Origin: Macrostomum lignano
Taxonomy: Eukaryota
Assembly (NCBI GenBank): GCA_002269645.1
Contig: NIVC01001245.1
Span: forward strand, 62,001 to 126,000
Length of the DNA stretch: 64,000 bases
Direction: 5' to 3'
Shown: piece after piece, positions 26,184-48,783 of the stretch
Layout of the letters: the number at the start of each line of letters is the position of its first letter
How positions within the stretch are numbered: position 1 is the stretch's first letter
Made by a program: the position numbers and the translations under genes
Notes under the pieces: generated by a model
The model's database searches: none
What the model was told of the DNA's origin: nothing
The model's input: only the letters and a program-made list of their open reading frames with translations

Positions 26184-27260
26184 TGTTGTGTCTTGTGTGC
26201 TAGTAATAATATTTACTCTCGCAGTTTCGTGTACTTCTGTGTACACTTCCCACACCCCTTCCATGTACAGTGGAGTCTAAGAGTTTTCGTAGCTAATTGC
26301 AACTATCATGACTTGGCTTATTTCATAACATGGCGTCGCAAGTCTAAACTACCTACCTATCCAGTCTGGCAAGCATGGATTGAGGCCGCCAGAGCCTATG
26401 GTTTTTGACACCAAAGGGCGGACAACTGGAGAAGGTGGATCAAATCGTTCGATTTTTATATGAAAGCTACGAAAAGAACTGAAAAAAGCAACGATGTGAA
26501 GATTGCCATTCTGATAACCGCCCTGGGATCCGACAGTCAAGATATCTTCTCCAGGTTTCCTGCAGACAAGGTAGCTATATTTACGACAAAGTAGTCGAGG
26601 CATTCAAAGACTACTGTGAGCCTCCGTCGCGCCATCCAGATGGGTCGAACATCCGAGACTTCGAAGCCGCAGGCTCGGACCCTGGCCACTGAGCAGATTA
26701 GCCGAGCGGCGCCTGCACCCGCGCCAGCGTCTGTCGATGCCGTGCAAAACCAAGCCAAGGCGACAGTCAGCCACGCCAGATCGGCTCGAAGCTGCGGATT
26801 CTGCGGACAGCAGCATGAGCGGCGCAAGTGCCCGGCCTTCGGGAAGACCTGCAATAACTGTGGTCGCACGAATCATTTTGCGTCCGTGAGCCGCTCAGCG
26901 AATGTCACGAGCTGGTGGAGGACTCCAAGGCCGACTGTGCTGGCGACGCTCCGACAGCAGCTATCATGACGGTGGAGAAGCCGAATGCTCGCCAGCCCAA
27001 GCTGCAGACTGATGCCTCGGCTATGATGGTTTGCCAGTCACGGACTCTGGAAGAAAAATGCACTTCAAGGTACGAGTAAAACTGGGGCGGATGTCAATGT
27101 GATTCCTCTGAGACAGCTGACCCAGTGTCATCGCCCTGCCGTAAGAATGTCAGACTTCAGTTTTTAGTCATTGGCGAGAACTCTACACCGATTATCGGCT
27201 GGAAATCAGCAAACAAGGAGCTTCAGTTGGTCAAGAAACTATTTGTTGAGCAAAGCCAGA
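26184..27260 (+). mobile_element. Ty3/Gypsy LTR retrotransposon remnant (LTR end, PBS, gag, protease)
   Basis: ...TAACA|TGGCG junction at 26330/26331. Gag motif NWRRWIKSFDFYMKAT...KIAILITALG; knuckle CGFCGQQH...CPAFGKTCNNCGRTNHFA; protease TGADVNVIP and LQFLVI...PIIGW. Multiple frameshifts. LTR start at 26184 is tentative. Confidence 0.85.
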
Positions 27261-28187
27261 GCAGCAGCATCAGCAAAGTGCAAAAAGTAGTTCCCCCCGC
27301 GGGGCCCCCGGACAACGGACACCCGGACAATCCGTCGATGAAGTGTCGCACCCAACCAGAATCCTGCGAAACTGGGTGCCGGCCCACTGCGGCGTGCCCG
27401 GCAACGAAGCCGCGGACCAGCAAGTCTGTATATCAACCCATTCGAAAGCTAAGGTGCCGGGCCGCTGAAAGGGACCACGGAGGTTGCCTTTATCCGAAGA
27501 TAGGACTCTGCTTGGGTGTTCATCGAGAGTCTACTGCACCAACCCGAGGACTTCTCAGCAGAGATCTATTGTGAATGTGACTGACGAAATGCTTGGGTGA
27601 AAAAACTACTAACAGTGCGAGAAGGTTCCCATATGTAACCAGGGGTTGTGATACTTCCAGCCTTCCAATGCTAACTGCTGATCTCTCAAACTCAAACTCA
27701 CAGCAGGTTTACAGAAATTACAGCCTTCCGATGCTAACAGCTTGGCAAGTGAAAAAAAAGAATTATCTTTAGTGAATAACTTTGTCTCTGTACAATACTT
27801 ATTCACTGCTACGGATTTGGAAATATAATTTTAGCATTTTCGTTCTTCGTTTCAACAAATTGTCTAGTTATGCCTGGGCCCACAATTTCAACCCTCGCTG
27901 TTTTTTGTGAGCAATTCGTCAAGACTAAAATAAAAAGCAAAATGGCTGCACAGCAGTGTGCATGATTTTGTCAACTCCTTAACCCTCTAAGATAAGGTAG
28001 CTGACAATACGTTTACATAGGTTGTACAGTCTTGCCCAGTACAGTTGAAAATAGCCTTATAACTATGAAGCTTGTGCAGCACCATATCATGGCTCATTGC
28101 TAACGCAGACAAGAATTTAAGACAATCACAATTGCTTTTGCTGAATTTTCAAGAACATCAAACCGGGACCAGTGTTGAGTACTTCAA

Positions 28188-30546
28188 ATGGCGGACGATA
28201 ACAACGAACTGCATAGGCAATCGCTTGAAGAAAAGACTAAAGAGTGCGAGAAATTAAGGGAAAAAAGTCGAAAGCTCAAGTTTAAAGTGTCGCAGCTGGA
28301 AATTCGGCTAAAGGAAGCGGAGAGCCAGCCATATCGTTCTCAATCGCTTCCAAGGCAGAGAAGGAATGGACTGGAGAGTGCAGATCTGCAGAAAGTCAAG
28401 GATCAAGCCATGGTGGAGGCTACGGAGAAGCTTCAAGCCAAATTTGATGAAGAACTGGCTGCGGCAGTTGCAGCAGAACGAGCGAAATGGGAGCAAGAAA
28501 TGGAGGCAACGCAAAAGCAGTTCGAGGACAAAATTCGAGATCAGGATTCGGCGCTTGTTGAAGCCAGAGAAGAGCTTGAAAGACTCAAGGCTACACAAGA
28601 AGGAGAGAATAACCGACTAAGTGTACCCAATCAGCCTAAAGGAGGCCTAGACTCATCATCATCGGAGTCTGAGCTGCAGAAGATGGCCCAGCAGATCAGC
28701 CAGGTGAGCCAGCAGCAGGCCAGCCTGCACGACAGCCTGAGAGACAACAGCGGAAGTATCGAGCAGATTCGCAACCTGATGCGGGAACGACAAGCCGAGA
28801 TGAAGAAGAAGCTGGCAGACAAGGATGCTGAGCTGGGAGAAAAGACTGAGCAGTGCGAGACTCTGCTAGGCAGCAGTGAGCAGATGAAGACCGAGTTGGC
28901 GAGGCTGCGCACCCGAGAGGAGGAGTGGCAGCAGACCAGCGCAGACTACCAGAAACTGAAGAACCAGTACAACCTGCTGACCAACACCAAGGAGCGCCTG
29001 GAGTCTGAGAAGGCCGACCTGCAGCGCAGCAGAGATGAGACGCTGGCGGCTGAGACGCAGAAGCTGCAGGCCAAGTTTGATGAAGAACGAAGCGCTGCGG
29101 TGGAGGCTGAGCGAGACAAGTGGCAACAGGAGTTGGCTGAGCTGCAGGCCAATCACGCTGCTGAGGTCAAAGCGCTACAACTGGAGCTGACAGGTGCAAA
29201 GAAGGAAAATGAAGGCAACTTGCAGGCTGCTCAGGCTGAGAATGAGCGGGCGCTGACCTCAGAGCGGGAGAGATGTCGAGCAGAGGCTGACAGACTTGTT
29301 GCTGAGCACGCGAGCGCTATTGAAGCGATGAGGAAGGAGTTTGAGGAGAAAATCCGAGAGCAGGAGAGGCTGACCGAGGAAGCCAGGCGGGAACTGCAGG
29401 AGCTCAGCGAGAAGCACGAGGCAGAGAAGGCCGAGATGTTTGAGTTGGTTAAGCAGTTTGGTTTGAGTAGCTTCTCAACCGATAACTTCAGAAGCAACGA
29501 TGCTGGCACGATGACCGACTCCTCTGCCGAGACGCTTAAGCTTGCCGAGCGCATTAGCTTAGGCTCCAGTGGCGCAAGGGCTGGTCAAGGAGCGGAAACG
29601 AGCACGGAAGCTCAAAGCCAACCAGCCAGCATTGACAGCTTTTGTTTTCTGTCACAGAGCGATGTTCTACTTGACAGGTTGGCTTTAAAACAATCCTTAC
29701 ATAACCATAGTTCTATAAGGAGGTTGTAGCCCAGTGGTTAGAGCGCGTCTGACTCACGACTGAAAGGTCAGGGGTTCGATTCCTGATTCCATAGGAACAA
29801 TTTGTGTTCTTGAGCAAGACACTTAACTCTGCATTGCTGTAAAACGGATGCCAGCATTTGCTGGGGTAATTAAGGATTTGTGTGGCTACCCTTGTTGTTC
29901 TTGGACTGAACAGCCATATTCAGCCTTCAGATGCCCCGCGCAATAGCTGCGGCTGAGCTGTCGGTTGCATAATCTTTCTATTAGGGCAGGTGTAATCAAT
30001 TTTTTTCAATAGTTCACAAGATTCAAATTTGATTTCAGCGTAAAACTCCGCAAGAAAGCCAGCTCGATGGCCAAGGAGCTCCTGGAGGCGAGGTCCCAGC
30101 TGCAACAGTCAAGCGAATACGCCGAGAACTTTCAGCGCTGCTCTCATCAAGTTGACGCAGCCAACTGCGACCTCTACAAGGAAATTGAGGGGCATAAAAA
30201 GCAGATAAGCACGGTCAGCCAAGTGGCCGAAGAGATGCGAGAGAAGTTCATATCGGAGGCGCGACGCGTGGCAAAGTTGGAGACGAAGTTGGCCAGCCTG
30301 AGGCAGGAAAACTCGGAGCTGCAGTGCAGAGACGCGACGCTAAGACTGGCTCAGGTCAATGACGCCTCCGAGATCGCCAGCCTCAACCGACGCCTGGACG
30401 AAGCCAAGAGAGGCCTGGCACAGGCTGCGGAGACTGCAGACTTGGCCAATAAGAAACTGGAAGAGACCAGACTCGAGATGGTGAAGCTCAAAGCCAAATA
30501 CCAATCAGTGAAGCAGGAGCTTCTGAAGGCTCAAAGAGGAACCTGA
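28188..30546 (+). CDS. Coiled-coil protein B1 (665 aa, 2 exons)
   Basis: join(28188..29677, 30039..30546); phase-2 intron GTTGGC...TTTCAG containing a SINE. In-frame TGA upstream of the ATG. Last exon homologous to the A and B3 C-termini. A possible 48-nt in-frame intron near 29447-29490 is unresolved. Confidence 0.8.
29721..29947 (+). mobile_element. tRNA-derived SINE family 1 with CORE-like central domain, copy 1
   Basis: A-box TAGCCCAGTGG, B-box GGTTCGATTCC, then CTTGAGCAAGACACTTAA...CTGTAAAA; close to copies at 60255 and 61037. Confidence 0.85.
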
Positions 30547-30921
30547 GGATGGTTGTGTGACTCAACAGTTTTTTATGATAACCTTTAACGCGTAATATTT
30601 GTCGAATTCAATTTTTTGTCGTATTACGAGTAGCTAGTGAAGCTTCAAAACTTCTAAACAGGGATCTAAGGGTTGAGATGTGTTCTGTTTTCATATGCGA
30701 ATCTATATATATTCCAGAATGCTTATAAATTTTGTACAGCAATTTTTCACGCAGTTCGTCGTTTAAAGAGCAACTCAATTTGCAATAAGCTTGTCTAATA
30801 TTTTGTTTTCAAATCGATCCAAATACTCGTAATTACGATTCTGCTGTAAACAATGTAAAAACTCAGCTTATCTTAATATTAGCATCCATGCTTCCTTTTA
30901 GGCTCACTACCAGATTAAGAA

Positions 30922-30922
<1 letters not shown>

Positions 30923-30975
<53 letters not shown>

Positions 30976-30990
30976 CAGTAGTAGTAGTAG
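30923..30990. repeat. (TAG)n microsatellite
   Basis: About 22 units, one interruption. Confidence 0.95.
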
Positions 30991-31271
30991 ATGTAAAAAG
31001 CAACACAGCGTCCTCCTGGATACTAGAGGAATAGCTTATAATATCAATTCACTATAGAGGCTACGGCACTTGCAGAAGGTTTGAACATCTGGCATTTACT
31101 AGTAGGATAGAAGTTGGAAAATAAGCTCAAAATGAGTACTCAATGCTAGCTTTCGACTGTACTCGAACTGGAAAAATAGCTCTCAGCGCTACTTTCTTTA
31201 TTTCGGCAGTTGGTACCTTGTTACGAGTGTGCTTAGCGTTGCTTACATAAAAATATGTATTTTGCGATCAG

Positions 31272-32422
31272 TGGACTGGGTGGCAACCGTTGGAGATCGA
31301 GAATTGAGGCTTTCCGAGCGTAGAGTCATTGTGACTTCTCGAAACTACAAAGTTCGCAGGCCTGGATTTCAAAGCACCAGTTCTGAAAAGCGAGCTGCAC
31401 AAGGGACTGCTGACACAGGCTCTCAGTTCGGTATGGATTTCCGTGATTCCTATACTCAGGTAAACTATGTGTAAAAGTTTGAAATGATCGATTTATATTT
31501 TACCTGAGACACAACAGAGTACTTAAACTCTATTGTGGGTATCAAATCCATTTCAGACTGAAGAAATAGATTTCACTGATTCTTACTTTCGGTTATCTAC
31601 TCGAGATACTGCCATTCAGTGCCTGCCGATCGAGCTCAGTAATGCCGGGATCCTATTCGAGCCATTATGTCAAGAAAATTGTGCTCAAGTAAACTATGCG
31701 TCAAAGTTTGAAATATGCTGCGATAGATCATATTTTATCTGAGATATAGCATAGTATGATGAGTACTTGAACTATTGTATCAAATCTATTTCAGACGCTT
31801 GAGCTTGACACTGATGACTGTTGTGTTCAAACTGATCCTGATGACAATGCGTTTGATATTGAGACTCAACAGTATTCCATGCTACTAAAGAAACTGAACG
31901 AGAAGCAAGCTGAGTTAGACAAACTGCTTAAGGACTTAAAAGAATCACGAAACAAAGTCAAAGAGCTCAATGAGATACTCAATGTGTACAAGAACGATAC
32001 AGTGAGTAATTTAAATATCAATTTCTAGTTTTCTTTTCGAGAGTGCCTCTTTCACAGGTGACACTTCTTGCAGGAAGACGAAGCCCGAAGTTCAAACGAG
32101 ACAAGTCGAGGCTTCACAGCTCTCGTACGCCACGGATTTAAAGCGGTACTCAGAAAGCATTGAAGCTGTCAACGACAGGCTGCACCGAAGACTGCAGGAG
32201 AGCAACCGTCAGCGGGACTCGGTGATTGAAGTGGCCGAAGAGTTGCGCAACAGACTGCTGGCTGAGTCGCGGCAGCTCACCGAGGTCAGGCAGGAGTACG
32301 CGGAGCTGCAGGCCGACAATGCCACTCTGAGACTGGCTCAGGCCAGAGACTGCAGCCACTGCGCCAGTCTGCAGAAGCAACTGGACGAGGCAGAGAAGGA
32401 ATTGGCTGAGACTAGACTCTAG
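31272..32422 (+). pseudogene. Coiled-coil paralogue B2, partial and probably disrupted
   Basis: Candidate exons 31272-31459, 31557-31688, 31795-32001 and 32074-32422. The third carries the B3 module (KLNEKQAELDKLLKDLKESRNKVKELNE); the last is close to B3's last exon (VIEVAEELRNRLLAESRQL). The final junction is out of phase. Confidence 0.6.
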
Positions 32423-33019
32423 ACTGGGAGGCCCTCTAATTCCTAGTGTGTCGGGCGATGAGACTTGGCCAGTGGCATTTGAAGGTCACTGTGAAACATT
32501 CTACTTTAAGGACGTTATTGCGAATAAGCACGTCGACTAGGCTTTGAAAACAATAATTTGGCAGATGGCGAATTACGAGCTACTCGTAAATAATTCCAAT
32601 TTAGAGAAAAACATTTTCTTTTGCTAAGGAATAAAACGTCTCACTAGAAGTTCCCACTCAATATTTTATTGAATAATAAATGCCATGACTTTTAGCAACC
32701 CTAAATATTGTAAAAAATAAAATCAATAAGATACAAAACTACGTAAACTTTGTCAGAAAGAACTAATAGTTTTGTATTTCTCGGCTTTTTAATCCTTAAT
32801 TGTATTGAAAAGTGGACGTGACTGCGAATTTCCGCCCTCTGGAAGTTTTCGTGCTATAACGCACTTAAACAAGAATGAAGTCAACAGCGCTCCAGGACTT
32901 CATTATTTAATGCAAAGTTCCAGGGGTCGGCAGACTCTGACCTGCGAAGCCTCTCTATCCAGCCCTTGGGTCCTTTGAGACCTTCACAATAGCAATCGGG
33001 CCTGCTCAAAGTTTTTGTC

Positions 33020-33362
33020 ACTTCTCAGCTCTCTTTTTTCATCTCCTCTTCTCTCCCCTTTTTTACACTTATCCCCCATCTCCGCTCTCTCCCCTCTCTC
33101 TTTCTTTCTCTCCTTTCTCCCCTCTTCTCTCTCCGCTCTTCTCTCCTCTCTCCCCTCCTCTCTCCCATTCTCTCCTCTCTCCCCTTCTCTCCTCTCTCCC
33201 TTTCTCTTCTCTCTCCAATCCTCTTTTCTCCCCTCTTCTTCCCTCTCTTCATTCTCCTCTCTTCCTTCCTTCCCCCTACTTTCTACCCTCTCCTCTCTCC
33301 CCTCTTCTAATCTCTCCTCTCTCATCTCCCCTCTTTCGTCTCTCTTCTCTCTTCTCCTCTCT
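33020..33362. repeat. Polypyrimidine/polypurine low-complexity tract
   Basis: Almost pure C/T on the plus strand. Confidence 0.9.
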
Positions 33363-33842
33363 TTGGCCTGCAGTCATACGCACTCTGGCTGCTAGATTCT
33401 ATATCTGGCTTTTATGAGCGTAAGTTAAAAAAAATTGCAGACAATCGCTTTATACGCCCGTACAATCAAAAGTGTACATTTGTAGTGTACATTTATAAAT
33501 TTGCAAAGGCAACGTACGTTTCGCAAGGTGGCGATCAGTACACGCGCAAAGGCCTAGAAACTCGAGTACAAGCGTAGCTCTCACTCCTGGCTGAACATCC
33601 AAAGTAGGCTATGTATAGTTTCTCTTCAGTTCTCTGCCTCTTTTAGTACCTTGTTCAACAAAATAGATAGATAAGTGCATGGTACGCTCGTATTATATTT
33701 TACTTTAATTAATTTTAAATGGCACTATCGTAAGAATATGTACAACCAGCGTGAGTTGTTAGCCCAAACATTACGAGCGCATGTTAAATGAAAAAGACAT
33801 CGTTGCAATTCATTTAAACAGTTTTTGATTTTCAAATTGCCT

Positions 33843-36800
33843 CATCATTGTCGGAGTCTGACCTGCAGAAGATGGAGCAGAGTAGTCAGGTGAGTCAGAT
33901 GCAGGCCAATCTGAATGACTACAAAAGATGAAGCGGTATTCGAAAATGCTCAAAGCATCCAAGAGTATGTGTCGAGGTAGTGAACAAAAAACTGTCATTA
34001 ATAATTTTAGCCCGCTAGGAAATTCAAGCATTATGGGAATCGAGGAATGAGGCCAGCGATGCAAGGCGAGACGGTCGGCGAGAACTCTGATGCTCAAAAA
34101 GATAAAACAATCCGGGAGCTGCGTAAACAGCTGGAGGAGAAGCAGATGGACCTGGACAGTTTGCTTCAAGACTTTGATGAGACTCGACACACGGTCTACC
34201 AGCTCAACGAGAAGGTCAAGGAGTACAAGAGTCGGTAAGCGATGTTTGATTTACAGAGTGGAGAAAACATTTACGAGACCACTGTTTGAGCATTCAAGTT
34301 GTAAGTGAACAAATTTTTCATGGGTTTAGAAGTTTTGGAAGTTTGGGTCGAAAGACAGACCTAGACAACTTAAGTAGAACGACACAAAATATGTGCGAAC
34401 TTGGGGCTCATTTTGAAGCGATAAGTCATAGAACAGAACCAACGCTAAAAATTCAGTCTCTAAAAAGAAAATCAAAAGCCTTCATTGACTACATGTATCT
34501 TGTATCAAGAGGCTTCCCCAGCGGTGATAATTGGGGATAGAGGGGAAAGAGGATTTCATGTGTACTTAGAAGCTTTTCAAATTATCTTCGAACTGCTGTG
34601 GGCCGCGTCAACTTGTCTGTCCCCAGCGGATCTCGATGCTGTAAAGCAGGACGGTCTCGACCACCTCCCAGAGGAACGCTGTCCTCCGGCGATCAGGTAG
34701 GGCGTCAGACTGCAGGACCGCCTTCACAGAATAGAGGGGCAAGGCAACCAGACTGCTGAGGTAGACGATTTTTTACTTCGCGGAAGTTGTGCACGCTGCA
34801 CGCAATGTACCACCATTGGGAGCATGGCTCTGACAACCAAGTTGAATGCCTTTTGAAATCTATGAAGACAACAATCAGGATCAACTGTCGTATTTCCCGC
34901 CTTCTCAATGTCTTGGCGAAAAACTAAAATCTGCAACCACTGTGCCGCAATGGGGCTGGAACACGTTCTCAGAAAATAGCGACGATGTGTGCCGTAGTAC
35001 ATTTGTTAGGCGCCGCCTCACCGAAGAGTAAGCGTTTCATCACTAGAAGACCTTACTGGCCACACAGGGGATGCGCAATGCTTTGATGGGCACCTCGTCT
35101 GTTTTCCAGCCCGGTGACTTGTCTGCAGAGCGTCACAACGTCGGCTATGCTGACTGGTGCTAAGCTGAATTTCTCATCTTGCGGATTGAGTAGCAGGGGC
35201 GGCAGCGCGTTTGCGAAGGCAGAAAAAACTCACACAGCTCGTTTCAGTTAACCAGTTTAAACTCCAAAGCTAGATGGGTTTCGTCCCGTCTGAGCGAAAT
35301 AGGAAAAGTTGAAATTTAGTCAGAACTTTGCTTGCACAATTCACACATACGCACGAAAAACCTGCATGATTTGGAATTCGGTAGTCCAGAAGGTGAGACA
35401 TTGGTCTTCCAATGCAAAAAAGGAAACTTCCTGTTTCGCATATGCATTTGATATTAACCTGCTGCTCTCCAACAAGTGGATTCCCTTATTGTGCAAACGT
35501 ACTATAATCATTAGACTTTATTAGTCAGTGAGTTTCTACGGGAGCTGACGAAACCCGCCAATCTCCAGAGCGGAGCAGTGGGCTCAGCTGGCCAGCAGTC
35601 GCGCATCTGGCGACCGCGGAGACGCCACCGCCACCGGCAGGCTGGAGAAGCTGCTGGCAGAGAAGCAGGTGGAGCTGGACAGCGTGCTCGAAGATTTTGA
35701 CGAGACTCGACACAAAGTCTACGAGCTCAACGAGAAGATTAAGGACTACGAGAGACGGTAAACCTTTTGCTATACTTTCCATATATTCACATCCGGGTTC
35801 GTCGCTTCATTATAACAAATTTATTTGTTTTTCCAAATTCCAGAAGCGACCGTCGCGACAACGTCGCCAACGTTCGAGCCGACGGAGACGTCAGCAAGCT
35901 GCAGACTCAGCTGACTAAAAATCAGGAAGAGCTGGACAGGTTGACTGAAGATCTGGACGAGATTAGGCATAAAGTGTACGAACTGAATGAGAAGGTCAAG
36001 GACTACGAGAATCGGTGAGCTTAGGATAGAAATCCTTTGAGTCGTCGTGATCCTTCTGGTGGCATCTGGTGCCCTTCCCTGATCATTCAGGTGGCATCTG
36101 GTGCCCCCTCCCTGATCCTTCAGGTGGCATATGGTGCCCCTCTCTGAACCTTCAGGTGACATCTGGTGTCGCCTCTCTGAACCTTCAGGTGGCCTCTGCT
36201 GTCCCCTCCCTGGTCCTTCAGGTGGCATCTGGTGACCCTCCCTGATCCTTCAGGTGGCATCTGGTGCCCCCTCCCTGATTCTTCAGGTGGCATCTGGTGC
36301 CCCCTCCCTGATTCTTCAGGTGGCATCTGGTGCCCCCTCCCTGAACCTTCAGGTGACATATGGTGCCCCTCCCTGATCTTTCAGGTGCATCTGGTGCCCC
36401 CTCCCTGAACCTTCCAGCGGCCTCTGCTGTCCCTTCCTTGATCATTCCGGTGGTCCTATTACCCTCTAATCACCCAGATCCCCTGCTACCCCCTACGAAG
36501 CAAGGGAGAGAGAGATAAGAATAACAAGATTGAGCTAGACAGAGAGAGAGAGAGAGAGATAACAGTAAACAGAGACAAGTGAAGGTGAACTAAAGAAAGG
36601 ACTAGAAAAGTCGCGACAACCTCCTTCAGGTTGCTGTGTCCACTCCCTTCCTTCAGACATCTTACAGAATCTCTCCCTACCGATTTTGTAAAGCTTGGCC
36701 AGGAGATCTGAACAAACTAATAAGCTTAAAAAAGTTTTTAATTACTATTTCCGATGAATTTTATAGCGGCTTGCATGCCAGTCCAGGCCAGACAGGAGTC

Positions 36801-38188
36801 AAGAACGGCGGTGCTGAAGCCAACAGCATGCAGCAAGCTGATGAGGCGGCCAAGCTGCAAAAGCAGCTGGAGCAGAAGCAGAGTGAGCTGGACAGTGTGC
36901 TCGAAGATTTTGATGAGACTCGACACAAAGTATACGAACTGAATGAGAAAATAAAAACTCTGGAGAGCGGGTAAGCATACGGGTCTTAAACTCTTTTATT
37001 AGCGGCTTTTGTTAGCGCAAGCAATGACTCCCGACCTCCTCTCGGCTTTTCAGCTCTGCTCAAGGCAACTCGCAGACAGAAAAACTGCAGCAGGAGATCA
37101 GGGAATTGAAGAGCCAGGCTGAAATTGACAAGAATTTGGCGAAGTAAGTTGATTATCCAATTTTCAGTTGTCATACTCCATCACACTCCGTGCATTCATT
37201 TCCATTTTCAGTCAGCTGCACATGGAAATTGAATCAGCGTGTAATGAAAAATCTTTCAAAGCCAAGAAGCTTCAGGCCGCAGAGACTGAAGTTGCAAAGC
37301 TGAAGGAAGAGCTTCACAGGATGAAGGAGTTGGAGGATGAACTCAGAAAGCAGTGCCGAGAGAGCGACGAGACTGTTCGACAGGTTCTTGCCAAGTCAGA
37401 TGAGAGCGAGAAAGAGCTCAGAAGACTGAGACAGGACTGCGAAGCACAGCGAGAGGCTTTGGAGCAGCACAGAAATCTGATTGAGCAGAAGGCTAATTTG
37501 GAGTCTCAGCTGAGGGAAACCATTGATGAGCTGAATAAGAGAAACGAGTCTCATGCCGAGGAGAGCGAGAAGAAGCTGGAGGAAAAGCAGAGTGAGCTGG
37601 ACAGCGTGCTCGAGGACTTTGATGAGACTCGGCACAAGGTCTACGAGCTCAATGAGAAGATTAAGAACTGCGAGACACGGTGAGAAAACGCAATTATTTA
37701 TTAGTTTTAGAAGCCTTGAAAACAAGATACGCACTTTATTTTTTAAACAATTCAGACTCCGACTACATGCTCCGGCTCCAGACTACGAATCTGACTTGCA
37801 ACAATACTCAGAGGACATCGAAGCCGTCAACGATGGACTGCTCAAGCAGCTGCAGGAATGCAACCGTCAGCGGGACTCGGTGATTGAAGTGGCCGAAGAG
37901 TTGCGAAATAGACTACTGGCTGAGTCGCGGCAACTCACCGAACTCAGACAGGAGCACTCGGAGCTTCAGGCGGACCATGCCACCTTGAGACTGGCTCAGG
38001 CCAGGGACCGCGGCCACTGCGCCAGTCTGCAGAGGCAACTGGACGAGGCACAGAGAAGTCTGAGGCGAGCCATGCAATCTGCTGAATTGCCTCAAACAGA
38101 GTTTACTGATCAGGCTGAGAGCAAAGATGAGACGTCCTCCGAATGCGACCTGTTTGCGAAGCATCGGGCCAGAGGAAGGCAGGAGTAG
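33843..38188 (+). CDS. Modular coiled-coil protein B3 (more than 590 aa, at least 8 exons; 5' end unresolved)
   Basis: Exons about 33843-33964, 34019-34234, 35569-35757, 35844-36014, 36767-36970, 37054-37143, 37212-37679 and 37756-38188. All introns GT-AG phase 2; internal lengths 216/189/171/204/90/468 are all multiples of 3. First exon matches B1 (SESDLQKM..SQVSQ.QA.L.D) but has one extra A at 33923-33926. Confidence 0.85.
34600..35210 (-). mobile_element. Decayed RT fragment of the same RTE-like LINE family as 41912-45538, in an intron of B3
   Basis: 35087-35180 aligns by eye to about 43385-43480; VFIDF(Q)KAFN motif near 34845-34875. Confidence 0.75.
36055..36420. repeat. 33-bp minisatellite, about 11 copies, intronic in B3
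   Basis: Unit CCTGATCCTTCAGGTGGCATCTGGTGCCCCCTC; 11-aa periodicity in minus-strand ORFs. Confidence 0.92.
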
Positions 38189-39267
38189 ATTGAGTTTGAT
38201 ACATGCAATAATTAACGTTCATTAACCGCAAAGTCTTATGCCAGCGAATTAACCGATCTTAATCTCAAAATTATTTACTATTTTTTTATACAAAATTTCG
38301 AAAGGTGTGCCCGCTTTGCGCCTCGTCAGTTTATTTACCGGGCCGTTCTGAGCAAAAAGACAGATAAATCATTGTAACTTTTTGTCTTGATTGCCAATTC
38401 CTTACGATGGGTTGTAAATAAAAGTATGATAAAAGTGATTTTTTGTTATATTAAATTTTGCAGTCGCGTTCACGGAAATCTCCATATTGAAATATGGTTA
38501 TACATATAAAAATCGTTTTCTGTACTCCCGGGCAATCTTGATTTCGGATAAATTCAATGAACACTACTAATAGTAGCCAGCCGGATATGCATAGATTTCC
38601 TTGTATTAACTGTATCAAACAACCAGCGAAATCTTTTACCTGTTTTTTTTTCTTTGCAAGATTCAACCTACTTAGTTACTTCAATTTAAAGATGATTTCT
38701 ATTAATAAAAGAGTAGAAGAGCTACAATTCAATCCTACCTCCTCTAACGTTTTTGGTCAGTCAGACAGACAGGCATACACGGTAGCTAGCTAGCTGAAGA
38801 GAAAAATCTAGCATCAAAAAAGAACAAACGAACAAGTGTGGAAAGAGATTTAAAAGGCACGCACTGAGAGCCGCTATGGCCTATGGCGGAGTCCCCACCC
38901 TGCTTGAAGCCACCGCTAGCTCCTAGTCGCCGTTTCCAGAGTTACGAAAGCACCGAGGGAGAGAGAGAGATGTTCTGCGGCCTGAGTATTTCTCTTATTT
39001 CTAACCCAAGGCTGTCTGCAGCTCAGGCCAGCTCTCCCTATACTCTTGAGTCTTTTTGTCTGCGCTTCAAACTCCGACTCACTCCAGTGCCGCAGCTAAC
39101 TGAGACACAGCGGCAGACAACAGGGCAGGTAAAAAATAAAATTCTGAGCACCTAAAGAAGACAACAGCTGCTAAACATCTGCTGTCGCCTCTACTTTTAA
39201 AGCACCCGTTGACAAGCTTTTTCTCCCTCTGTCTTCTGCATCCTTAGCTACGCTAGCATACACTGAC

Positions 39268-40008
39268 ATGCAACAACTCGAGACTGGGACCCAGACGGAA
39301 GACGTTCCTGCAAGTGTCGAGCCGGTCGAACCGCCAAAGACGCCACAACAGCGGCCCGTATCGTCAGGCAGCTGTGCGAAGCCCACTACTCCGAAGACAC
39401 CTCAACAGCAGCAAGAGCAGCAGCGTCCCATCTCCTCTAGAAGCTCTCCAAAGACGCCTCAGCAACAGACGCAACAACGTCCTGCAACAGCAGCTGCGTC
39501 GGCATCATCTCAGCGGCTGTTATCCGCTCGCCCGAAGACTGCCGTGTCCGGTGCGCAGGCACCGCAGGCTACAACGCTTTCGAAGCCGCAGCAGCAGCAG
39601 AAACGCCAGCAAAGGGCTAAGCAGCCACTTCTAGTAGATCGAACACCAATGGTGTTCAGCTTCAACCCGGATCCGCGACTCCGAAGCTGGCAACGTCTCG
39701 AGCACATGCGGCTGCACCAGATGGGCTTGAGCAGCAAACTGTCCAGACGTTACAACGTCTGCCGGGTGCTGGACTTTCAACCGGTAGGTCAGCGACTGCC
39801 GGAGCCCACGCCGCTTGGCGCTCTGCTGCCCTCCCTGGAAGGCAGCAGCTTCTTCACGGAGAACGAGCGCAAGAAGAACGACGTTGCTCCGTTCCGGACC
39901 TTCCAGAAGCCCACATGCGGCGTATTCTTCAGTCGCGACACCGAAAACAAGAAATTGAAACACGATCTGGAAGCTACAGATATTATCAAGTGGCGTTATT
40001 TCCTGTGA
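39268..40008 (+). CDS. Hypothetical protein: Q/P/T/S-rich disordered N-half plus globular-looking C-terminal domain; 5' exons unresolved
   Basis: 246-codon ORF with GC-rich codon pattern, acceptor-like TCCTTAG at 39241-39247; AT-rich sequence after the stop. Confidence 0.6.
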   Translation: MQQLETGTQTEDVPASVEPVEPPKTPQQRPVSSGSCAKPTTPKTPQQQQEQQRPISSRSSPKTPQQQTQQRPATAAASASSQRLLSARPKTAVSGAQAPQATTLSKPQQQQKRQQRAKQPLLVDRTPMVFSFNPDPRLRSWQRLEHMRLHQMGLSSKLSRRYNVCRVLDFQPVGQRLPEPTPLGALLPSLEGSSFFTENERKKNDVAPFRTFQKPTCGVFFSRDTENKKLKHDLEATDIIKWRYFL

Positions 40009-41501: not shown

Positions 41502-44500
41502 TTAATCGTCACTGTAGTCGGAAGGACACCGAAACTCATCGTCACTCGACCCCATCAAATCATCCATTTCTCGAACAGCTCTGTTTACATTCGCACTGCG
41601 GCGCTTTGCTGCCCTCTGCTGCTGAGTAGGAGCTGGCCGCTTCTGGGCCCGCTGCGGCGTAGCAGATGTGGTGGCCTGCGAAAGCCCGCTGGCTTGTGGA
41701 GTCGAGGCTGCGCTTCTTGCGCTGGTTGAATTTGAAGGCGTCATGGCACCGATTGTGTTGCGGCGATGCGACCGCCCCGAGATTCGGTCAGCTCCGTGCC
41801 TCAGGTACTGCCGCACTTGGCTAGCGACCAGATCCTGAGACGGCCTGCCGTCCTCCGCTCTGGTGCCGTAAATTGCTGAGACGGCATCTGCAATTCCAAC
41901 AAGGGATGCAACAACAACAACAACAGAGTACGCTGCCGGGTCGTAAAAAGCAACGTCAGATGGCACGCTTCGAAGCTTGGGCGCGAACAAAGGCCGCACC
42001 GCCGGCAGAGTCCGGGGCGCCGGCGTCAGCCAGCAGACAGTCGACGTAGCGCCGTGTCCTCGCTTGTCCCCGCCGGTAGGGTGCCTGCAACGTAAGTAGC
42101 AGCACCTCCTGCACCGGCTCCGGACAGTAGGCCTCGGCGCGGATGACGTGGCCTGCCAGCTGGAGTCGCCGACGGCGCAGCAGATCGCTAGGACGGGCCA
42201 GGCCGGCGCGATGGTAGAGCGCCGTGTTGGTGACTCGCTCGTTGCCGATCTTGAAGGCGGCGCGCAGCAGGCCAGCGTGCGCCGCGTCGACTTGAGCCTC
42301 GAGCGAGTCTGTCAGCGTCCAGGTCTCGGCGTTGTATAACAGGACGGTTTCGATCACCGCCTGGAACAGCGCCGCCCTCTGGCGGTCCGGTAGGGCCTCG
42401 GACTGCAGGACTGACCTTATAGAACGAAAGGCAGCCCAGGCAAGTCCTCGGCGACGCCGCAGATCCTCGCGAACGTCGGGAACCAGACCGCCGAGGTAGA
42501 CGAACTGCTGACATCTTGGAAGCTCACTCGCCTGTCCGTCAGCGCCTCGGCAGAAGATTGCAGCCTCGGTGTCGTCCGGCACGCATAGCACGACGGTCTT
42601 CTGCGTGTTGACCACCAGGCCGACGCTCGCCGCAACGGCAACCAGCCTATCCAGCTGTCGTTGGGCGCCCTCGACGGTCGAGGACAGCAGGGCGAGGTCA
42701 TCGGCGTAGCCAAGCACGCTGAGCCGTCTCTCCGGTTGGCGTCGACCCACGCGTCGCCGCAGCAGGAAGCCGTCGTCGTTGGAAGGCAGAGCAGTCCGTA
42801 GCACCCAGTCAAGCACCAGAATAAATAGGAACGGCGCTAGCGTATCTCCCTGGAGCACCCCGGAGGATGTCTCGAAGAAATCCGATAGGCCGTCCGGTGT
42901 TGAGACAGCAGCCGTCGTGCCGTGGTACAGCGCCATGACAGCAGAAATCAGCAGCTCTGGCACGTTGTACGCACGGAGCACCTCTGGGAGCGCGTCCCTC
43001 ACGACCGAGTCGAAGGCCTTCCTGAAATCGACGAAGATCAGGATGAGGGTCAACTGGCGGATGCGCGCCTCCTCGATGACTCGCCGAAGAGCCAGGATCT
43101 GCGTCACTGTGCCGCGATGGGGCCGGAATCCGTTCTGCTCAGGCCGCAAGTACGGGTCCAGCACAGGCTGTAGCCGCGATAGCAGCATGCGGTTGAACAG
43201 CTTCGCGGCGCAGGACTGTAGGCAGATGCCTCGATGCTCCTCGAGCTTGGTGGTGCCCGGCTTCTTTGGAATGGCGACGATGTGCGCCGTGGTCCATTCG
43301 TTTGGCGCCACCTCACCGGAAAGCACGCGGTTCATCACTCTGGCGACCTCAGTGGCCACGCAGTGGATCCGCAGCGCCTCGGTGGGCACCTCGTCCGGAC
43401 CAAGCGCTTTGCCGCCCGGCGACTGCCGAGCGAACTTCACAACGTCGGCTGTGCTGACTGGGGCAACGTTGAAACTCTCCTCCGCCGGCAACGGCGTCTC
43501 CGGCGGCAGCCTCAGATTTTCTGGAAGCGGAGGGGGCGGCGCGTTGACAATGGCGGCGAAGAACTCGCGCAGCTCGTTCCTGCGCTCATCCGGAGTGTCG
43601 CCTGCCAGGTTGAGCGCAATGCGCCGCTTTCGCCCCGTCAGAGTGTTGATGACGGACCAGGCCACGCGCCCTCTGGCATCGGGCCCTGCGGCAGAGACGG
43701 CTTGGATGGCGTCATCGACAGCGGACTGCTGCCGCTGCAGGTAGACAGCCGCCAGAGCCTCCTCCGCCTCGCGAGTTTGCCGCCCACTCAGACGGAGCCT
43801 CTCCAGATCTTCCCTCGCTTCGTCGATCGCGGGGTCGTCCTGCCAGACCGGCTGCCCGCGCTGGGCCGGTCGCATCAGCGGGACTGCTTGCTCCGCAGCG
43901 GCTCGAACTGCAGCGCTCACCTCCGCGTACTCGGCTCCTCCACGCTTGTCGCCCAGCGCAGTGACAAAGGCACCGGCAAAGCGACGTCGCGTCTCGGCGT
44001 CCCTGAGCGCGCGGTAGTAGCGCCGCGGTGGCCGCTTTGGCGGACGGTAGAGCGGGTCCCGAAGCCGAAGGTCGCAGATGAGCAGTCGATGGTCGGACCG
44101 CAGAGCCAGCGGTGTAATGGTGCGGCAGTTGGTGACGCGGCGGCGCTCACGAAAGCGCACAAGCACGTGGTCGAGCTGTGCCAGCCTCCGCGTAGCGTTC
44201 CGGCCGCGCGCGTTCCGCCGCCTCCGCTTGCAGCCCACGAAGGTCGCGAGCCTGCCCGGTGACTTGCGGAATCTGGTGTTGGCCGACACCATGTCCTGTC
44301 TCTCCAGGAAGTCCTCTAGCGCTCCGGTGTTGCCGTTCTCGCGCGCTGTCACGAAAAGCGATCGCTCGGACCTACGCAGAACTGCGTTCAGGTCTCCGAG
44401 AATGACCACTGTGTCACGTTGCGCCATCTCCTCCACCCGCACCGAGAGTTGCTCGAAGAAGGCCTGAGCCTCATCGGAGCGGGTAGCAGGCGGCGCGTAC

Positions 44501-45889
44501 GCGCAGAACAAACGGGCGTTCCGGCCGCGAAGCCGGACGTCGACCCGAAGCAGCCGAGAAGACAGGGAGACGCAGCGACAGCTCTGCTGCAGCCTCGGTC
44601 CGATCAGTGCTCCAACTCCTCCACGGCCTCGCTCATCCGCTGAGGTGTACCAGAGTGTCCAACCGGCGCCCAGGTCCTCACAGTGAAGTCCGGGGTCGGC
44701 TCTGATAGACACCTCCTGTAGTGCGATGACATCACAGCTGAGGTCGAGCGCTAGCCTCGCCAGCAGCCCTCTCCGCCATGTGGCCTTGAGAGTGCGGCAG
44801 TTCAGCGTCCCGACCCGAAGCGTGCCCTCTGGTACGGCTGGGGCTCGATGCTGGTGAGCCTCATGGTCCCCGGCGCCACCCGGAAGATCCAGTTGGGCCA
44901 GCGCAGCAGCAGCTCGGCGGGCGGCGCCACGTTGCCGACCTCGCCAGTTTCGCTCGCGACGACGTTCGACTCGCCGACGCGCGCTCCGCTGCCCTCGCTT
45001 GGTCCTGCCGCATTTGGCCGCCGCAGCAGTTAAGCGCGGCTCTCCGCTCTTACCACGAGGAGGTAGCGGCATTTATCTGCACCGTGGTGCAAATAAATTA
45101 AGACTGCAAATAAATTAAGACTGCAAATAAATTAAGACTGCAAATAAATTAAGACTGCAAATAAATTAAGACTGCAAATAAATTAAGACTGCAAATAAAT
45201 TAAGACTGCAAATAAATTAAGACTGCAAATAAATTAAGACTGCAAATAAATTAAGACTGCAAATAAATTAAGACTGCAAATAAATTAAGACTGCAAATAA
45301 ATTAAGACTGCAAATAAATTAAGACTGCAAATAAATTAAGACTGCAAATAAATTAAGACTGCAAATAAATTAAGACTGCAAATAAATTAAGACTGCAAAT
45401 AAATTAAGACTGCAAATAAATTAAGACTGCAAATAAATTAAGACTGCAAATAAATTAAGACTGCAAATAAATTAAGACTGCAAATAAATTAAGACTGCAA
45501 ATAAATTAAGACTGCAAATAAATTAAGACTGCAAATAAATGCAAAATAGGTCGATAACTATACAAGAGTGTGGTATAAAATGACTATGTCCGTGTAAAAT
45601 AAGCATTATAATTATAATTGTTTTTATGGGTTACAGATTGCAAGAAGGGTTAGCTGCATTTAGCTTAATAACAGAATATCGTACCTTGGATGTAGCCCAA
45701 AAACTTGGATTGAAACGCGAGCTCCCGATCGGATAGCTCCGTGGCTGCACCAGACTGGCACACCCTGTTCCGCATGCCCTGTCCATTGAAATTGACAAGT
45801 GCTTGCAGTCGGGGCGTCAGGATGACATTGACCATGTCGGTGACTGCAGTTGCCCAATCTCCGCGCCGGCATAGACGGAGATGATTAAT
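41502..45889 (-). CDS. DUF4806-like protein (partial, 2 exons, 196 aa) whose intron contains the LINE
   Basis: Exon 45889-45685 (INHLRLCRRGDWATAVTDMVNVILTPRLQALVNFNGQG...FQSKFLGYIQ), donor G|GTACGA, joins in phase 1 to acceptor TTGCAG|AT at 41887 (DAVSAIYG...QVRQYLRHGADRISGRSHRR). Family name recalled from the motif pattern, not searched. Confidence 0.7.
41912..45538 (-). mobile_element. Full-length non-LTR retrotransposon, RTE-like, single ORF
   Basis: Intact 1038-aa ORF; short 3' UTR then (GTT)n tail at 41911-41924; 17-bp repeat array at the 5' end; candidate TSD ATGCAA at 41906-41911 and 45539-45544. Confidence 0.9.
41956..45072 (-). CDS. LINE polyprotein: AP endonuclease + reverse transcriptase
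   Basis: APE motifs GTLNCRTL, ALQE, GDLNA, LDHVL, SDHR. RT motifs EQNGFR, FVDFRKAFDSV, GVLQGDTLAPFLF, GYADDLAL, FVYLG. Arg-rich N-terminal extension. Confidence 0.97.
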   Translation of the reverse strand: MPLPPRGKSGEPRLTAAAAKCGRTKRGQRSARRRVERRRERNWRGRQRGAARRAAAALAQLDLPGGAGDHEAHQHRAPAVPEGTLRVGTLNCRTLKATWRRGLLARLALDLSCDVIALQEVSIRADPGLHCEDLGAGWTLWYTSADERGRGGVGALIGPRLQQSCRCVSLSSRLLRVDVRLRGRNARLFCAYAPPATRSDEAQAFFEQLSVRVEEMAQRDTVVILGDLNAVLRRSERSLFVTARENGNTGALEDFLERQDMVSANTRFRKSPGRLATFVGCKRRRRNARGRNATRRLAQLDHVLVRFRERRRVTNCRTITPLALRSDHRLLICDLRLRDPLYRPPKRPPRRYYRALRDAETRRRFAGAFVTALGDKRGGAEYAEVSAAVRAAAEQAVPLMRPAQRGQPVWQDDPAIDEAREDLERLRLSGRQTREAEEALAAVYLQRQQSAVDDAIQAVSAAGPDARGRVAWSVINTLTGRKRRIALNLAGDTPDERRNELREFFAAIVNAPPPPLPENLRLPPETPLPAEESFNVAPVSTADVVKFARQSPGGKALGPDEVPTEALRIHCVATEVARVMNRVLSGEVAPNEWTTAHIVAIPKKPGTTKLEEHRGICLQSCAAKLFNRMLLSRLQPVLDPYLRPEQNGFRPHRGTVTQILALRRVIEEARIRQLTLILIFVDFRKAFDSVVRDALPEVLRAYNVPELLISAVMALYHGTTAAVSTPDGLSDFFETSSGVLQGDTLAPFLFILVLDWVLRTALPSNDDGFLLRRRVGRRQPERRLSVLGYADDLALLSSTVEGAQRQLDRLVAVAASVGLVVNTQKTVVLCVPDDTEAAIFCRGADGQASELPRCQQFVYLGGLVPDVREDLRRRRGLAWAAFRSIRSVLQSEALPDRQRAALFQAVIETVLLYNAETWTLTDSLEAQVDAAHAGLLRAAFKIGNERVTNTALYHRAGLARPSDLLRRRRLQLAGHVIRAEAYCPEPVQEVLLLTLQAPYRRGQARTRRYVDCLLADAGAPDSAGGAAFVRAQASKRAI
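45089..45540. repeat. 17-bp tandem array, 26 identical units + 10-bp partial
   Basis: Unit GCAAATAAATTAAGACT; (45531-45089)/17 = 26. Confidence 0.97.
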
Positions 45890-47327: not shown

Positions 47328-48783
47328 ATGTACAACCCCTTACTGCAGGACACTTTACCCAATACTTCATCGCCTATCGTGGCCTTGAGCTCAGATGCTG
47401 CCGATGCAGAACCGTCGCAGTCTTCGCCTATCATCAGTGACAATAACAACCCTGAGTATCAAATCAGCTCGAACAACAGCGACCGGCGATTCCGCCAGCA
47501 GCTCGTGCAGTCTCAAGCCAGCGGCACACCGGCAGCAGTTTTCATTGGCAGCAGCTTTTCCAGTCCGCACTGTCGCTACTGCCTCGGCGGCCGGTCGCTG
47601 TCCTTGAACTGCAGCGACCAAGCGGACGATCATCGGGTCGGCGAGTCGCTCGTCGGTCCCTGCCTCTGCAAAGGCACGATGGGCCTGGTGCACCCCGGCT
47701 GTTTAACTCGCTGGCTGCAGCTCAGCCGCAAGCACAGGTGCGAACTGTGCGGCTTTGATCTGCGTCAGTGCGACCAGCAGCTGATGCCGGAGCTGGCGCA
47801 GGCGGCCGCCGATGCCGCCGCAGCTGCCGCCGCCGCCAGGAGCGAAGCCGCAGCAGAGGCTGCCACCACAGCCGCGCAGGGCGAAGCATCCGCTGATGGG
47901 TCGACTGTGGCACCGAACTGGTGTACATGGCTGCGACAACCGGACCAGGTGAAAATTGCACTTTTTTGCTTTACTTTAAATGATTTTATTCTTTTTAGGT
48001 GGCGGTTTGAGCAAAGGAAGATCTAAGGTCAGCTGGTCTCAACTCAGCAGAAAACGTACTGAGTACTTGCGTAACGTCTAGGCTATTGTAATCCGTACTA
48101 TTATAAATCACTAGTTTTAAGAAGCTGTCGCAGTATACGACCGTACAAGGAATTAGCGGCATAGCAACTAGTGAGGATTTACAAAAAGACAGTTTCAGAA
48201 GCTGTAAAAGCTTTGCCAGATGCTCAAGATGCTCAATAAGCGCGAGCGACTCGACCCGTGATATTTGAAATTTTGAAATTCAAGCTTTTCTTTCCTACTT
48301 TTCTTAGAACTGCAGTTCATCACAATTAAAAAATGGGATGACACGACGCAACAGTAAACTGCCTGACAGTGAGTTATTCAGGGTAGCTGTACGTCACAAA
48401 TTGACCCCGTGTGAAGCTACAGAATGAGATGCTCAACTTTTTCAACAATGAGTTTCAATAAGTTGAAAAGTTTTGCTTTTTTGACTGAATTTTTTCGTCA
48501 GGTCTGCTGTCTGGCTGTCACAATATGCTGCTTGGCCGTGGCGGTTCCGCTAATCGGTGTGCTCATCTTTTTTATCGCCGATCTACGCCAGGAAGAGACG
48601 AAGCAGAGCAACGGCTATCAGCTGGTGCTCTTCGAACTGCTGACGGGCTTCGTCAGCGTTGGCGTCATCATCTGGATTGTCTACGGAGCCGCCACCTGCT
48701 GGCGCCGATACCAGAGCTGGCGAATGGAGCTGACTGTTCAGCGCGAGATGACTGTCATTGTGGCACTGGAAGAGGGATCCTGA
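47328..48783 (+). CDS. MARCH-family (RING-CH/RINGv) membrane E3 ubiquitin ligase, 300 aa, 2 exons
   Basis: join(47328..47948, 48502..48783), phase 0. C4HC3 pattern CRYC...PCLCKGTMGLVHPGCLTRWLQLSRKHRCELCG, followed by two hydrophobic helices. Confidence 0.9.

Follow-up and report, generated by a model that had tools for sequence, protein, structure and literature searches.

B3, a gene on the forward strand of a 64,000-nt stretch of the Macrostomum lignano genome (contig NIVC01001245.1, positions 62,001 to 126,000; hereafter the window), is probably best explained overall as a lineage-restricted coiled-coil gene built by old exon duplication, in which module number varies at the genomic level and constitutive inclusion of the exons is most likely.

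Gene model and module exons of B3

B3 corresponds to the Macrostomum lignano hypothetical protein BOX15_Mlig004492g1 in GenBank (598 aa), and its sequence PAA70373.1 was reproduced exactly by joining eight exons, from 33872-33889 through 37756-38188, as follows.

33872..33889, + strand: exon 1, encoding MEQSSQ, phase 0 donor
34011..34234, + strand: exon 2, linker and module M1 (34113-34234), 224 nt, phase 0 to 2
35569..35757, + strand: exon 3, linker and module M2 (35636-35757), 189 nt, phase 2-2
35844..36014, + strand: exon 4, linker and module M3 (35893-36014), 171 nt, phase 2-2
36767..36970, + strand: exon 5, linker and module M4 (36849-36970), 204 nt, phase 2-2
37054..37143, + strand: exon 6, spacer exon without a module, 90 nt, phase 2-2
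37212..37679, + strand: exon 7, continuous coiled coil of ~115 residues and module M5 (37558-37679), 468 nt, phase 2-2
37756..38188, + strand: last exon, C-terminal helical domain followed by the stop codon

The original prediction had started exon 2 at 34019 and had counted six symmetric internal exons of phase 2-2. In the GenBank model PAA70373.1 exon 2 starts at 34011, and the start at 34019 was rejected since SSQ/PARKF is the reading across this junction in GenBank and in two older, independent models; an acceptor at 34019 would preserve the frame only if the first exon were a different, unannotated one (33915-33976). Exon 2 has phase 0-2, leaving five symmetric exons and reducing the in-frame combinations from the 64 that had been claimed to 32. 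The exon 1 sequence was identical in loci L001 and L006.

Frame +1 translation of the five module-bearing exons gave a 3' end of ...KQLEEKQ.ELDSVLEDFDETRHKVYELNEKIK.YE.R in each, with AG/GT borders. When the 64-kb window was searched by tblastn with the module, exactly the five places proposed for B3 were recovered (E values of 8e-15, 1e-17, 1e-12, 4e-17 and 1e-18), as was the predicted sixth copy in the neighboring gene B2 (31891-31992, E 4e-9), and the next best match after these six had an E value of 0.018. A repeat finder independently reported a DNA family, D6, with six copies of 121 nt at the same places. The module is ~40 residues long and comprises five heptads, and the exon parts upstream of it could not be aligned to one another, in keeping with the different linkers noted earlier.

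Tandem exon duplication produced the B3 module exons, a claim of the original prediction which is supported by the six DNA-level copies and by a B3 intron position that is constant at the closing Arg/Gly codon. For M1 to M5 the donor lies after the second base of this codon (CGN or GGN). The five exons were similar at tblastn E values of 1e-12 to 1e-18, and exons 3, 4, 5 and 7, together with spacer exon 6, were all of phase 2-2; the 0-2 phase of exon 2 is attributed to later 5' truncation. Tandem exon duplication arrays with symmetric phase are reportedly a general phenomenon, and the B3 module array is ordinary exon duplication: as in known arrays, neighboring exons are similar, have lengths divisible by three and share intron phase and position. 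The 2-2 phase of B3 differs from that of shuffled extracellular modules, which are typically 1-1. B3 differs further in that conservation is confined to the last ~120 nt at the 3' end of each exon; the flanking introns are unalignable, and the similarity beyond the donor site that would mark a recent event is absent.

Among the B3 modules pS was 0.36-0.73, pN was 0.06-0.23 and dN/dS was 0.02-0.32. Synonymous sites were nearly saturated between modules, while introns and linkers were unalignable. Since similarity is lost at the donor site, the flanking introns no longer align and pS has reached these values, the duplications are old. Given the same pS range and longest module-to-module exact DNA matches of at most 20 nt, recent exchange among the modules by gene conversion or NAHR was rejected. 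As judged from dN/dS, the modules are under purifying selection. Present-day constraint on them was not demonstrated, because between two ~96% identical loci module pN/pS was ~0.46 from only 12 substitutions.

Paralogues and origin of B3

The window holds two further members of the family upstream of B3, and a remnant of parental coding sequence was found at the 5' end of B3.

28188..30546, + strand: gene A (BOX15_Mlig010584g1), 665 aa, module-less paralogue
31795..32001, + strand: B2 module exon, with the sixth and most divergent module (31876-32001), phase 0-0
32078..32422, + strand: B2 last exon, encoding a paralogue of the B3 C-terminal domain
33840..33925, + strand: parental coding remnant at the B3 5' end, repeat family D13, 88% over 40 nt

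Gene A consists of a long N-terminal coiled coil and the C-terminal helical domain common to gene A, B2, B3 and a longer paralogue, type C. The last exon of B3 belongs to repeat family D7 and matched B2 (32126-32396) at 83%. In B2, which is absent from the NCBI annotation as a separate gene, the intron after the module sits 4 nt downstream of the B3 position. Type C is represented by loci L002, L004 and L005, in which modules M0 to M4 lie downstream of a gene-A-like N-terminus, with no intron between M0 and M1 and no M5. The number of modules per gene copy is 0 in gene A, 1 in B2, 5 in B3 and 5 (M0-M4) in type C.

From sequence comparison, B3 is a 5'-truncated chimeric derivative of type C. 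The three type C loci were 89-96% identical to B3 from 34019, the exact start of the homology, to ~37570, where the homology stops at the beginning of M5. The opening residues of B3 exon 2, KFKHY, are the tail of the lost module M0. The 5' remnant has its homologue inside gene A and type C (SSSSESELQKMAQQISQVSQQQASLHD); the B3 start codon is an internal Met codon in the parent, and the exon 1 donor, CAG/GTGAGT, occupies the former parental codons Q-V-S.

A B3 of this structure, 5'-truncated and chimeric, might also be a redundant and decaying duplicate in a partly polyploid genome, with module conservation inherited from its type C parent and no longer maintained in B3, although we do not consider this a likely account. 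Between B3 and its duplicate locus pN/pS was 0.40 overall and 0.67 in the long coiled-coil exon, a third B3 copy is decaying, with a stop in M4 and with M5 and its donor site lost, and some type C models are frameshifted too. The DV1 line assembly moreover contains 180 Mb of duplicated blocks that are at least 95% identical (PMC5730564). Two long intact open reading frames (598 and 586 aa) in which all 14 of 14 splice sites are conserved, a pN/pS of 0.07 in the C-terminal exon and a transcript-based gene model at both loci nevertheless speak against decay of B3 itself. M5, which type C lacks, is yet the copy nearest the consensus at the protein level.

A very improbable alternative is a shared transcription unit for gene A, B2 and B3, whether a read-through or polycistronic precursor or a gene with three alternative 3'-terminal exons; gene A would then have the modules as optional extensions at its C-terminus. 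Two older UniProt models, P0003 and P0012, do join A, B2 and B3 in frame; both, however, are in ab initio style and come from an earlier assembly, and one jumps implausibly from the B2 C-terminal exon to M5. Tandem paralogues are often fused by gene predictors, and gene A and B3 are separate in the annotation based on RNA-seq and TBONE. A shared unit would be consistent with the lack of AATAAA or ATTAAA within 750 nt past the gene A stop, whereas B2 and B3 each have such a signal (AATAAA at 38417 downstream of the B3 stop), and with the missing NCBI annotation of B2. It would also be consistent with a genome in which ~7% of transcripts start as precursors spanning several genes that trans-splicing separates (PMC5730564).

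Our preferred reading is that B3 is an expressed gene restricted to Macrostomum lignano, within a small coiled-coil family (A, B2, B3 and type C) that grew by tandem and segmental gene duplication. Old tandem exon duplication generated an exon array, each exon having a fast-evolving linker and a conserved module and ending at a phase-2 intron. Segmental duplication of a type-C-like parent provided B3 modules M1 to M4, while the N-terminus of the parent and the greater part of M0 were lost; in the same event an internal Met codon became the start codon and coding CAGGTGAGC a splice donor. B3 additionally has its fifth module and the C-terminal exon of the family. Purifying selection kept the modules while linkers and introns diverged. 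Differences in module number among the gene copies would stem from gains, losses and decay in the genome.

Inclusion of the module exons

Whichever of the five phase 2-2 exons are included, the frame is kept and no stop arises (32 of 32 combinations), the split codons being CGN, GGN or AAN. Taken at face value, this would allow the symmetric module exons to act as cassettes, with combinatorial skipping giving up to 32 isoforms with 0-5 modules, a reading which we regard as unlikely. The pyrimidine tract of the exon 3 acceptor is weak (0.55), and the exon 5 acceptors in the models of the two loci lie 15 nt apart (the duplicate locus's model uses the in-frame acceptor at 36782), both AGs being present in both loci, so some splice-site flexibility may exist. 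Equal phase, however, is the automatic outcome of exon duplication: symmetric phase is a precondition of tolerated exon duplication and is uninformative on skipping. Exon 2, which carries M1, is not skippable, as a transcript without it has a premature stop. The older independent models P0003 and P0006 likewise contain consecutive modules.

RNA-seq data underlie the GenBank annotation, which retained alternative transcripts whose coding sequences differ (PMC5730564). At the two intact loci it contained no transcript without individual repeat exons and a single all-exon coding sequence per locus, although short-read assembly over three near-identical loci with internal repeats may miss minor skipped isoforms. 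This indirect result speaks against the length tuning by alternative splicing that had been proposed at the outset, and combinatorial splicing of the module exons is unsupported. Differing module numbers were seen at the genomic level only, between paralogues and in the one decaying copy.

Tau/MAP exon 10 (3R/4R), titin PEVK and nebulin repeats are documented cases of cassette-exon isoforms. B3 resembles them in having one repeat per symmetric exon, so that skipping would alter valency or length without a frameshift. It differs from them in that no isoforms are annotated or were seen, and the B3 repeat is a coiled-coil heptad segment, unlike the microtubule-binding and PEVK motif repeats of tau and titin.

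Protein architecture, relationships and other elements of the locus

The coiled-coil architecture that had been predicted for the B3 modules is supported by heptad pattern and structural modeling. Across the modules hydrophobic residues filled 35/35 heptad positions 'a' and 22/35 positions 'd', while at b, c, e, f and g only 1-7 of 35-42 residues were hydrophobic, in keeping with the 3-4 hydrophobic periodicity over at least four heptads that defines a canonical coiled coil. Six polar residues of the module were invariant (Q, D, D, E, R, E). AlphaFold2 predicted all modules to be helical (pLDDT ~70-85), interrupted only at the linkers, where low-confidence breaks fell at residues 89-97, 147-158, 203-218 and 267-295; this model is of a monomer, from a five-sequence alignment with a pTM of 0.30, and is silent on pairing. 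That the modules are multivalent is plausible, given the invariant polar non-core positions and dN/dS of 0.02-0.32.

The B3 protein would be a segmented coiled coil, probably dimeric. Its five zipper-like modules, each presenting a conserved polar face and set on flexible spacers, may be repeated units for pairing or for binding a partner, and the conserved C-terminal helical domain may serve as an anchor. GCN4-type leucine zippers are dimeric and ~33 residues long, and golgins are segmented coiled-coil tethers. Like the former, the B3 module is built of heptads, five in number, around a hydrophobic a/d core; like the latter, B3 alternates helical segments with flexible breaks and has a conserved C-terminal domain as a possible anchor. 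No Pfam, PDB or sequence relationship was found to link B3 with bZIP, golgin/GRIP, TMF, BicD or intermediate-filament proteins. It is conceivable, although quite unlikely, that five near-identical zippers on flexible linkers constitute a taxon-restricted sticker-and-spacer scaffold, in which out-of-register interchain pairing would lead to a network or condensate. Valency in such a scaffold would be set by paralogue (0, 1 or 5), possibly tuned by skipping of the five symmetric exons. Macrostomum would in that case have evolved a new structural material, for instance in sperm, cilia or adhesive organs.

Homologues outside M. lignano were not found by word-index searches with B3 and gene A, by phmmer run exhaustively against 1.84 billion representatives, or with a profile of the C-terminal domain, which gave zero matches. 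Apart from M. lignano paralogues, these searches returned one match to a phage-like repeat protein, P0008, which was rejected as spurious. A phmmer search of the PDB gave nothing. Sub-threshold Pfam matches to CCDC113, Fez1, PUMA_CC and COG3_N were generic to coiled coils and were rejected as compositional. The paralogous models carry UniRef names that are mutually inconsistent despite close paralogy, namely 'Protein bicaudal D' (P0003), 'IF rod domain-containing' (P0006), 'TMF_TATA_bd domain-containing' (P0007) and 'GRIP domain-containing' (P0012). They share with the proteins so named a long, alpha-helical, coiled-coil character. No Pfam match to BicD, GRIP, TMF_TATA_bd or Filament at E <= 0.1 was obtained with P0001-P0005, P0007, P0009 and P0012 (P0006 being covered through P0003, which contains its sequence), nor was BICD found by phmmer among PDB chains or in the exhaustive search. 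A full-text locus-tag search and the supplements of M. lignano papers, one of them incomplete, yielded no expression or tissue data.

The locus is a clear and datable case of lineage-restricted gene family construction: old exon duplication yielded a selected 40-residue module, segmental duplication a chimeric, 5'-truncated copy, and the copies later decayed at unequal rates in a partly polyploid genome. For those working with M. lignano, the misleading automatic names (bicaudal D, GRIP, TMF, IF rod) are corrected, and the unannotated gene B2 and a pseudogene copy are flagged. A wider question would be touched only if the modules were a new multivalent assembly unit or were truly combinatorially spliced.

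No RNA elements were found with Rfam (27000-40000), and no tRNA with ARAGORN. Introns 2 and 4 of B3 contain the following elements.

34631..35178, - strand: non-LTR retrotransposon fragment inside B3 intron 2, repeat families D9-D12
36048..36453, no strand: 33-nt minisatellite of 12.5 copies in B3 intron 4

The intron 2 fragment is related to a 1038-aa endonuclease/reverse-transcriptase open reading frame at 41956-45072 (- strand). The type C intron matching B3 intron 2 is ~126 nt, and L001 also has the retrotransposon insertion. The minisatellite array of intron 4 is shorter at the type C loci.

Gene model and module repeat of B3

Nuclear DNA from the free-living flatworm Macrostomum lignano (assembly Mlig_3_7, contig NIVC01001245.1) was analyzed; GenBank annotation of this species derives from a genome-guided RNA-seq assembly (PMC5730564). 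The hand-built translation of gene B3 was 100% identical to PAA70373.1 ("hypothetical protein BOX15_Mlig004492g1", 598 aa), and this protein was exactly reproduced by joining eight exons.

Exons of B3 (forward strand)
33872-33889, exon 1
34011-34234, exon 2, 224 nt, phase 0 to 2, carrying the first module
35569-35757, exon 3, phase 2-2
35844-36014, exon 4, phase 2-2
36767-36970, exon 5, phase 2-2
37054-37143, exon 6, spacer, phase 2-2
37212-37679, exon 7, long, with module M5 at its end, phase 2-2
37756-38188, last exon

As first noticed, the module ...KQLEEKQ.ELDSVLEDFDETRHKVYELNEKIK.YE.R closed all five exons said to carry it, with AG/GT borders. A tblastn search with the module recovered these five exons (E 1e-12 to 1e-18) and a sixth copy in the upstream paralogue B2 (31891-31992, E 4e-9), the best unrelated match having an E of 0.018, while a repeat finder independently returned a 121-nt DNA family of six copies. 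DNA alignment of the module exons demonstrated similarity over the last 105-120 nt only, ending at the donor, with no alignment among linkers or introns; the presence of a different linker before each module was thereby borne out, and exon duplication is supported. Two corrections were required. The first module exon does carry the module but its annotated acceptor is 34011 rather than 34019; its phase is 0 to 2, and skipping of this exon leads to a premature stop. Symmetric 2-2 phase was thus observed for five internal exons and not six and, because only these five are phase 2-2, the number of skippable combinations is 32, not 64. All 32 subsets remain in frame without a stop, and no B3 exon junction can create one because every split codon is CGN, GGN or AAN. 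In B2 the module exon (31795-32001) has phase 0-0 and its intron is displaced by 4 nt. With these corrections the module repeat is confirmed as real and far exceeds chance.

The proportion of synonymous differences among B3 modules was 0.36-0.73, near saturation, against a non-synonymous proportion of 0.06-0.23 (dN/dS 0.02-0.32; M4 versus M5, pN 0.06 and pS 0.73), and the longest exact DNA match of any module pair was 20 nt. With pS this high and matches this short, the duplications are old and recent gene conversion between modules is ruled out, and the low pN against near-saturated pS shows that the peptide has been maintained by purifying selection.

The coiled-coil architecture was also upheld. 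Within the heptad register of the module, position 'a' was hydrophobic in 35 of 35 cases and 'd' in 22 of 35, and the polar non-core positions Q, D, D, E, R and E were unchanged in seven distinct module copies. AlphaFold2 was run on P0001 with an alignment of five paralogue sequences (mean pLDDT 66, pTM 0.30) and gave helices at pLDDT 70-85, with low-confidence breaks between modules at residues 89-97, 147-158, 203-218 and 267-295. The predicted picture is of five zipper-length helical units with flexible spacers, then a continuous helix of ~165 residues ending in M5, followed by a helical C-terminal domain of ~100 residues. From selection on the polar positions, it is reasonable to infer that the module array may be multivalent.

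Exon skipping and module number

The combinatorial splicing proposed for B3 found no support. In the RNA-seq-based GenBank annotation each intact locus had a single CDS with every exon included, although minor isoforms could escape short-read assembly over near-identical loci. Alternative transcripts were dropped from that assembly only where the CDS was identical (PMC5730564), and consecutive modules were also present in older independent gene models. Equal phase in the B3 exons is a requirement of exon duplication and so not in itself a sign of skipping. The sole isoform-like difference was a 15-nt in-frame shift of the exon-5 acceptor between the models of two loci; both AGs (36767 and 36782) are present in both loci, the window model using the first and its 96% duplicate the second, which may be a case of tandem alternative 3' splicing.

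The DV1 line has a partly polyploid genome, with 180 Mb of the assembly in duplicated blocks at least 95% identical (PMC5730564). Three copies of the cluster formed by gene A, B2 and B3 were found, namely the window, L001 and L006. The window and L001 were ~96% identical, each with five intact modules and with 14 of 14 splice sites kept; pN/pS between their B3 genes was 0.40 overall and 0.07 in the C-terminal exon, and ~0.46 for the modules on 12 substitutions only. At L006 (NIVC01000419.1, 17842-18811), B3 has a stop in M4, 12-nt and 42-nt in-frame linker deletions, and a 114-nt deletion taking out the donor site along with most of M5; it is an unannotated pseudogene copy. The module count is 0 in gene A, 1 in B2, and 5 each in B3 and type C, where the sets differ. 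The count thus changes from gene to gene and also through decay of a redundant copy, and both kinds of variation are genomic.

At L004, a locus of the longer type C paralogue, the protein model PAA83445.1 (P0009) lacks eight linker residues, SADRGTAA, encoded at its own locus (about 12540-12590); a transcript from a different allele or paralogue probably served as its source. This linker is GCC-rich and prone to insertions and deletions.

Gene family and origin of B3

Paralogues upstream of B3
28188-30546, gene A, BOX15_Mlig010584g1, without the module
31433-32422, B2, unannotated at NCBI, one module

A C-terminal domain is common to gene A, B2 and B3, with 83% DNA identity between the final exons of B2 and B3. 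Three loci were found to carry type C (L002, L004 and L005): behind a gene-A-like N-terminus and an acidic Ser-rich linker come M0 to M4 (M0 and M1 in one exon), then the spacer exon, the long exon without M5 and, last, a divergent C-terminal domain. B3 and type C share 89-96% identity over a stretch that begins exactly at 34019 and runs to about 37570; in its first residues, KFKHY, the tail of M0 is preserved. Homology to coding sequence from within gene A and type C was observed for the 5' end of B3 (33840-33925): the B3 ATG is a Met codon from the interior of the parent, and the exon-1 donor, CAG|GTGAGT, corresponds to the former codons Q-V-S. B3 is therefore a 5'-truncated chimeric derivative in which a type-C-like module array is joined with M5 and a terminal exon like that of B2. 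A non-LTR retrotransposon fragment, which type C lacks, was later gained by intron 2.

No homologue beyond M. lignano was found, either by word-index searches or in an exhaustive phmmer run over 1.84 billion representatives. Pfam scans gave no domain above its cut-off, and a PDB sequence search gave no relative with a solved structure. The UniRef names of paralogous models (bicaudal D, IF rod, TMF_TATA_bd, GRIP) were mutually contradictory and none was reproduced. Among known systems, B3 comes closest to a tandem exon-duplication array encoding coiled-coil repeats; functional analogy to the cassette exons of tau, titin PEVK and nebulin is purely formal.

The B2 ORF is intact, with four exons, all introns in phase 0 and AATAAA signals present; its first two introns are alike, which suggests another small internal duplication. 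No AATAAA or ATTAAA was observed within 750 nt of the gene A stop (30546-31300). In older UniProt models (A0A1I8G439, A0A1I8GM67) gene A is joined in frame to B2 and on to B3, which could be a read-through or polycistronic precursor or a gene-prediction artefact. Gene A also has an internal repeat (28400-29400), KLQAKFDEE..AAV.AER.KW.QE then FE.KIR.Q...EAR.EL, present twice.

Neighbouring elements

Other features of the window
29720-29800, tRNA-like, SINE-like stretch in a gene A intron; no tRNA called by ARAGORN
30923-30990, (AGT)n microsatellite after gene A, 22.7 units
33079-33364, CT-rich low-complexity tract between B2 and B3, 285 nt
34631-35178, B3 intron 2, fragment 75-83% identical to the element at 41956-45072
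36048-36453, B3 intron 4, 33-nt minisatellite, 12.5 copies, 85% matches, CAGGTG in every unit; array in type C loci about half this length
39268-40008, neighbour gene, CIMIP3 homologue (ciliary microtubule inner protein 3)
41956-45072, minus strand, intact-looking 1038-aa non-LTR retrotransposon ORF (Exo_endo_phos and RVT_1) in a 66% GC block
45088-45540, perfect 17-nt tandem array (TGCAAATAAATTAAGAC), 26.6 copies, 100% matches, adjoining the retrotransposon ORF
47328-48026, neighbour gene, RING-variant domain protein
54546-55910, neighbour gene, Cys-loop ligand-gated ion channel

Coiled-coil ORFs at 2714-4338, 8787-9848, 13199-14071 and 21578-22669, all on the minus strand, had 24-36% similarity to the type C tail. 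Pfam gave nothing better than sub-threshold matches for ORFs 8754-9848 and 12989-14071 (IFT57, KASH_CCD) and no match for ORFs 2959-4338 and 21635-22669. The ORFs may be a second, more distant family or mere compositional matches.
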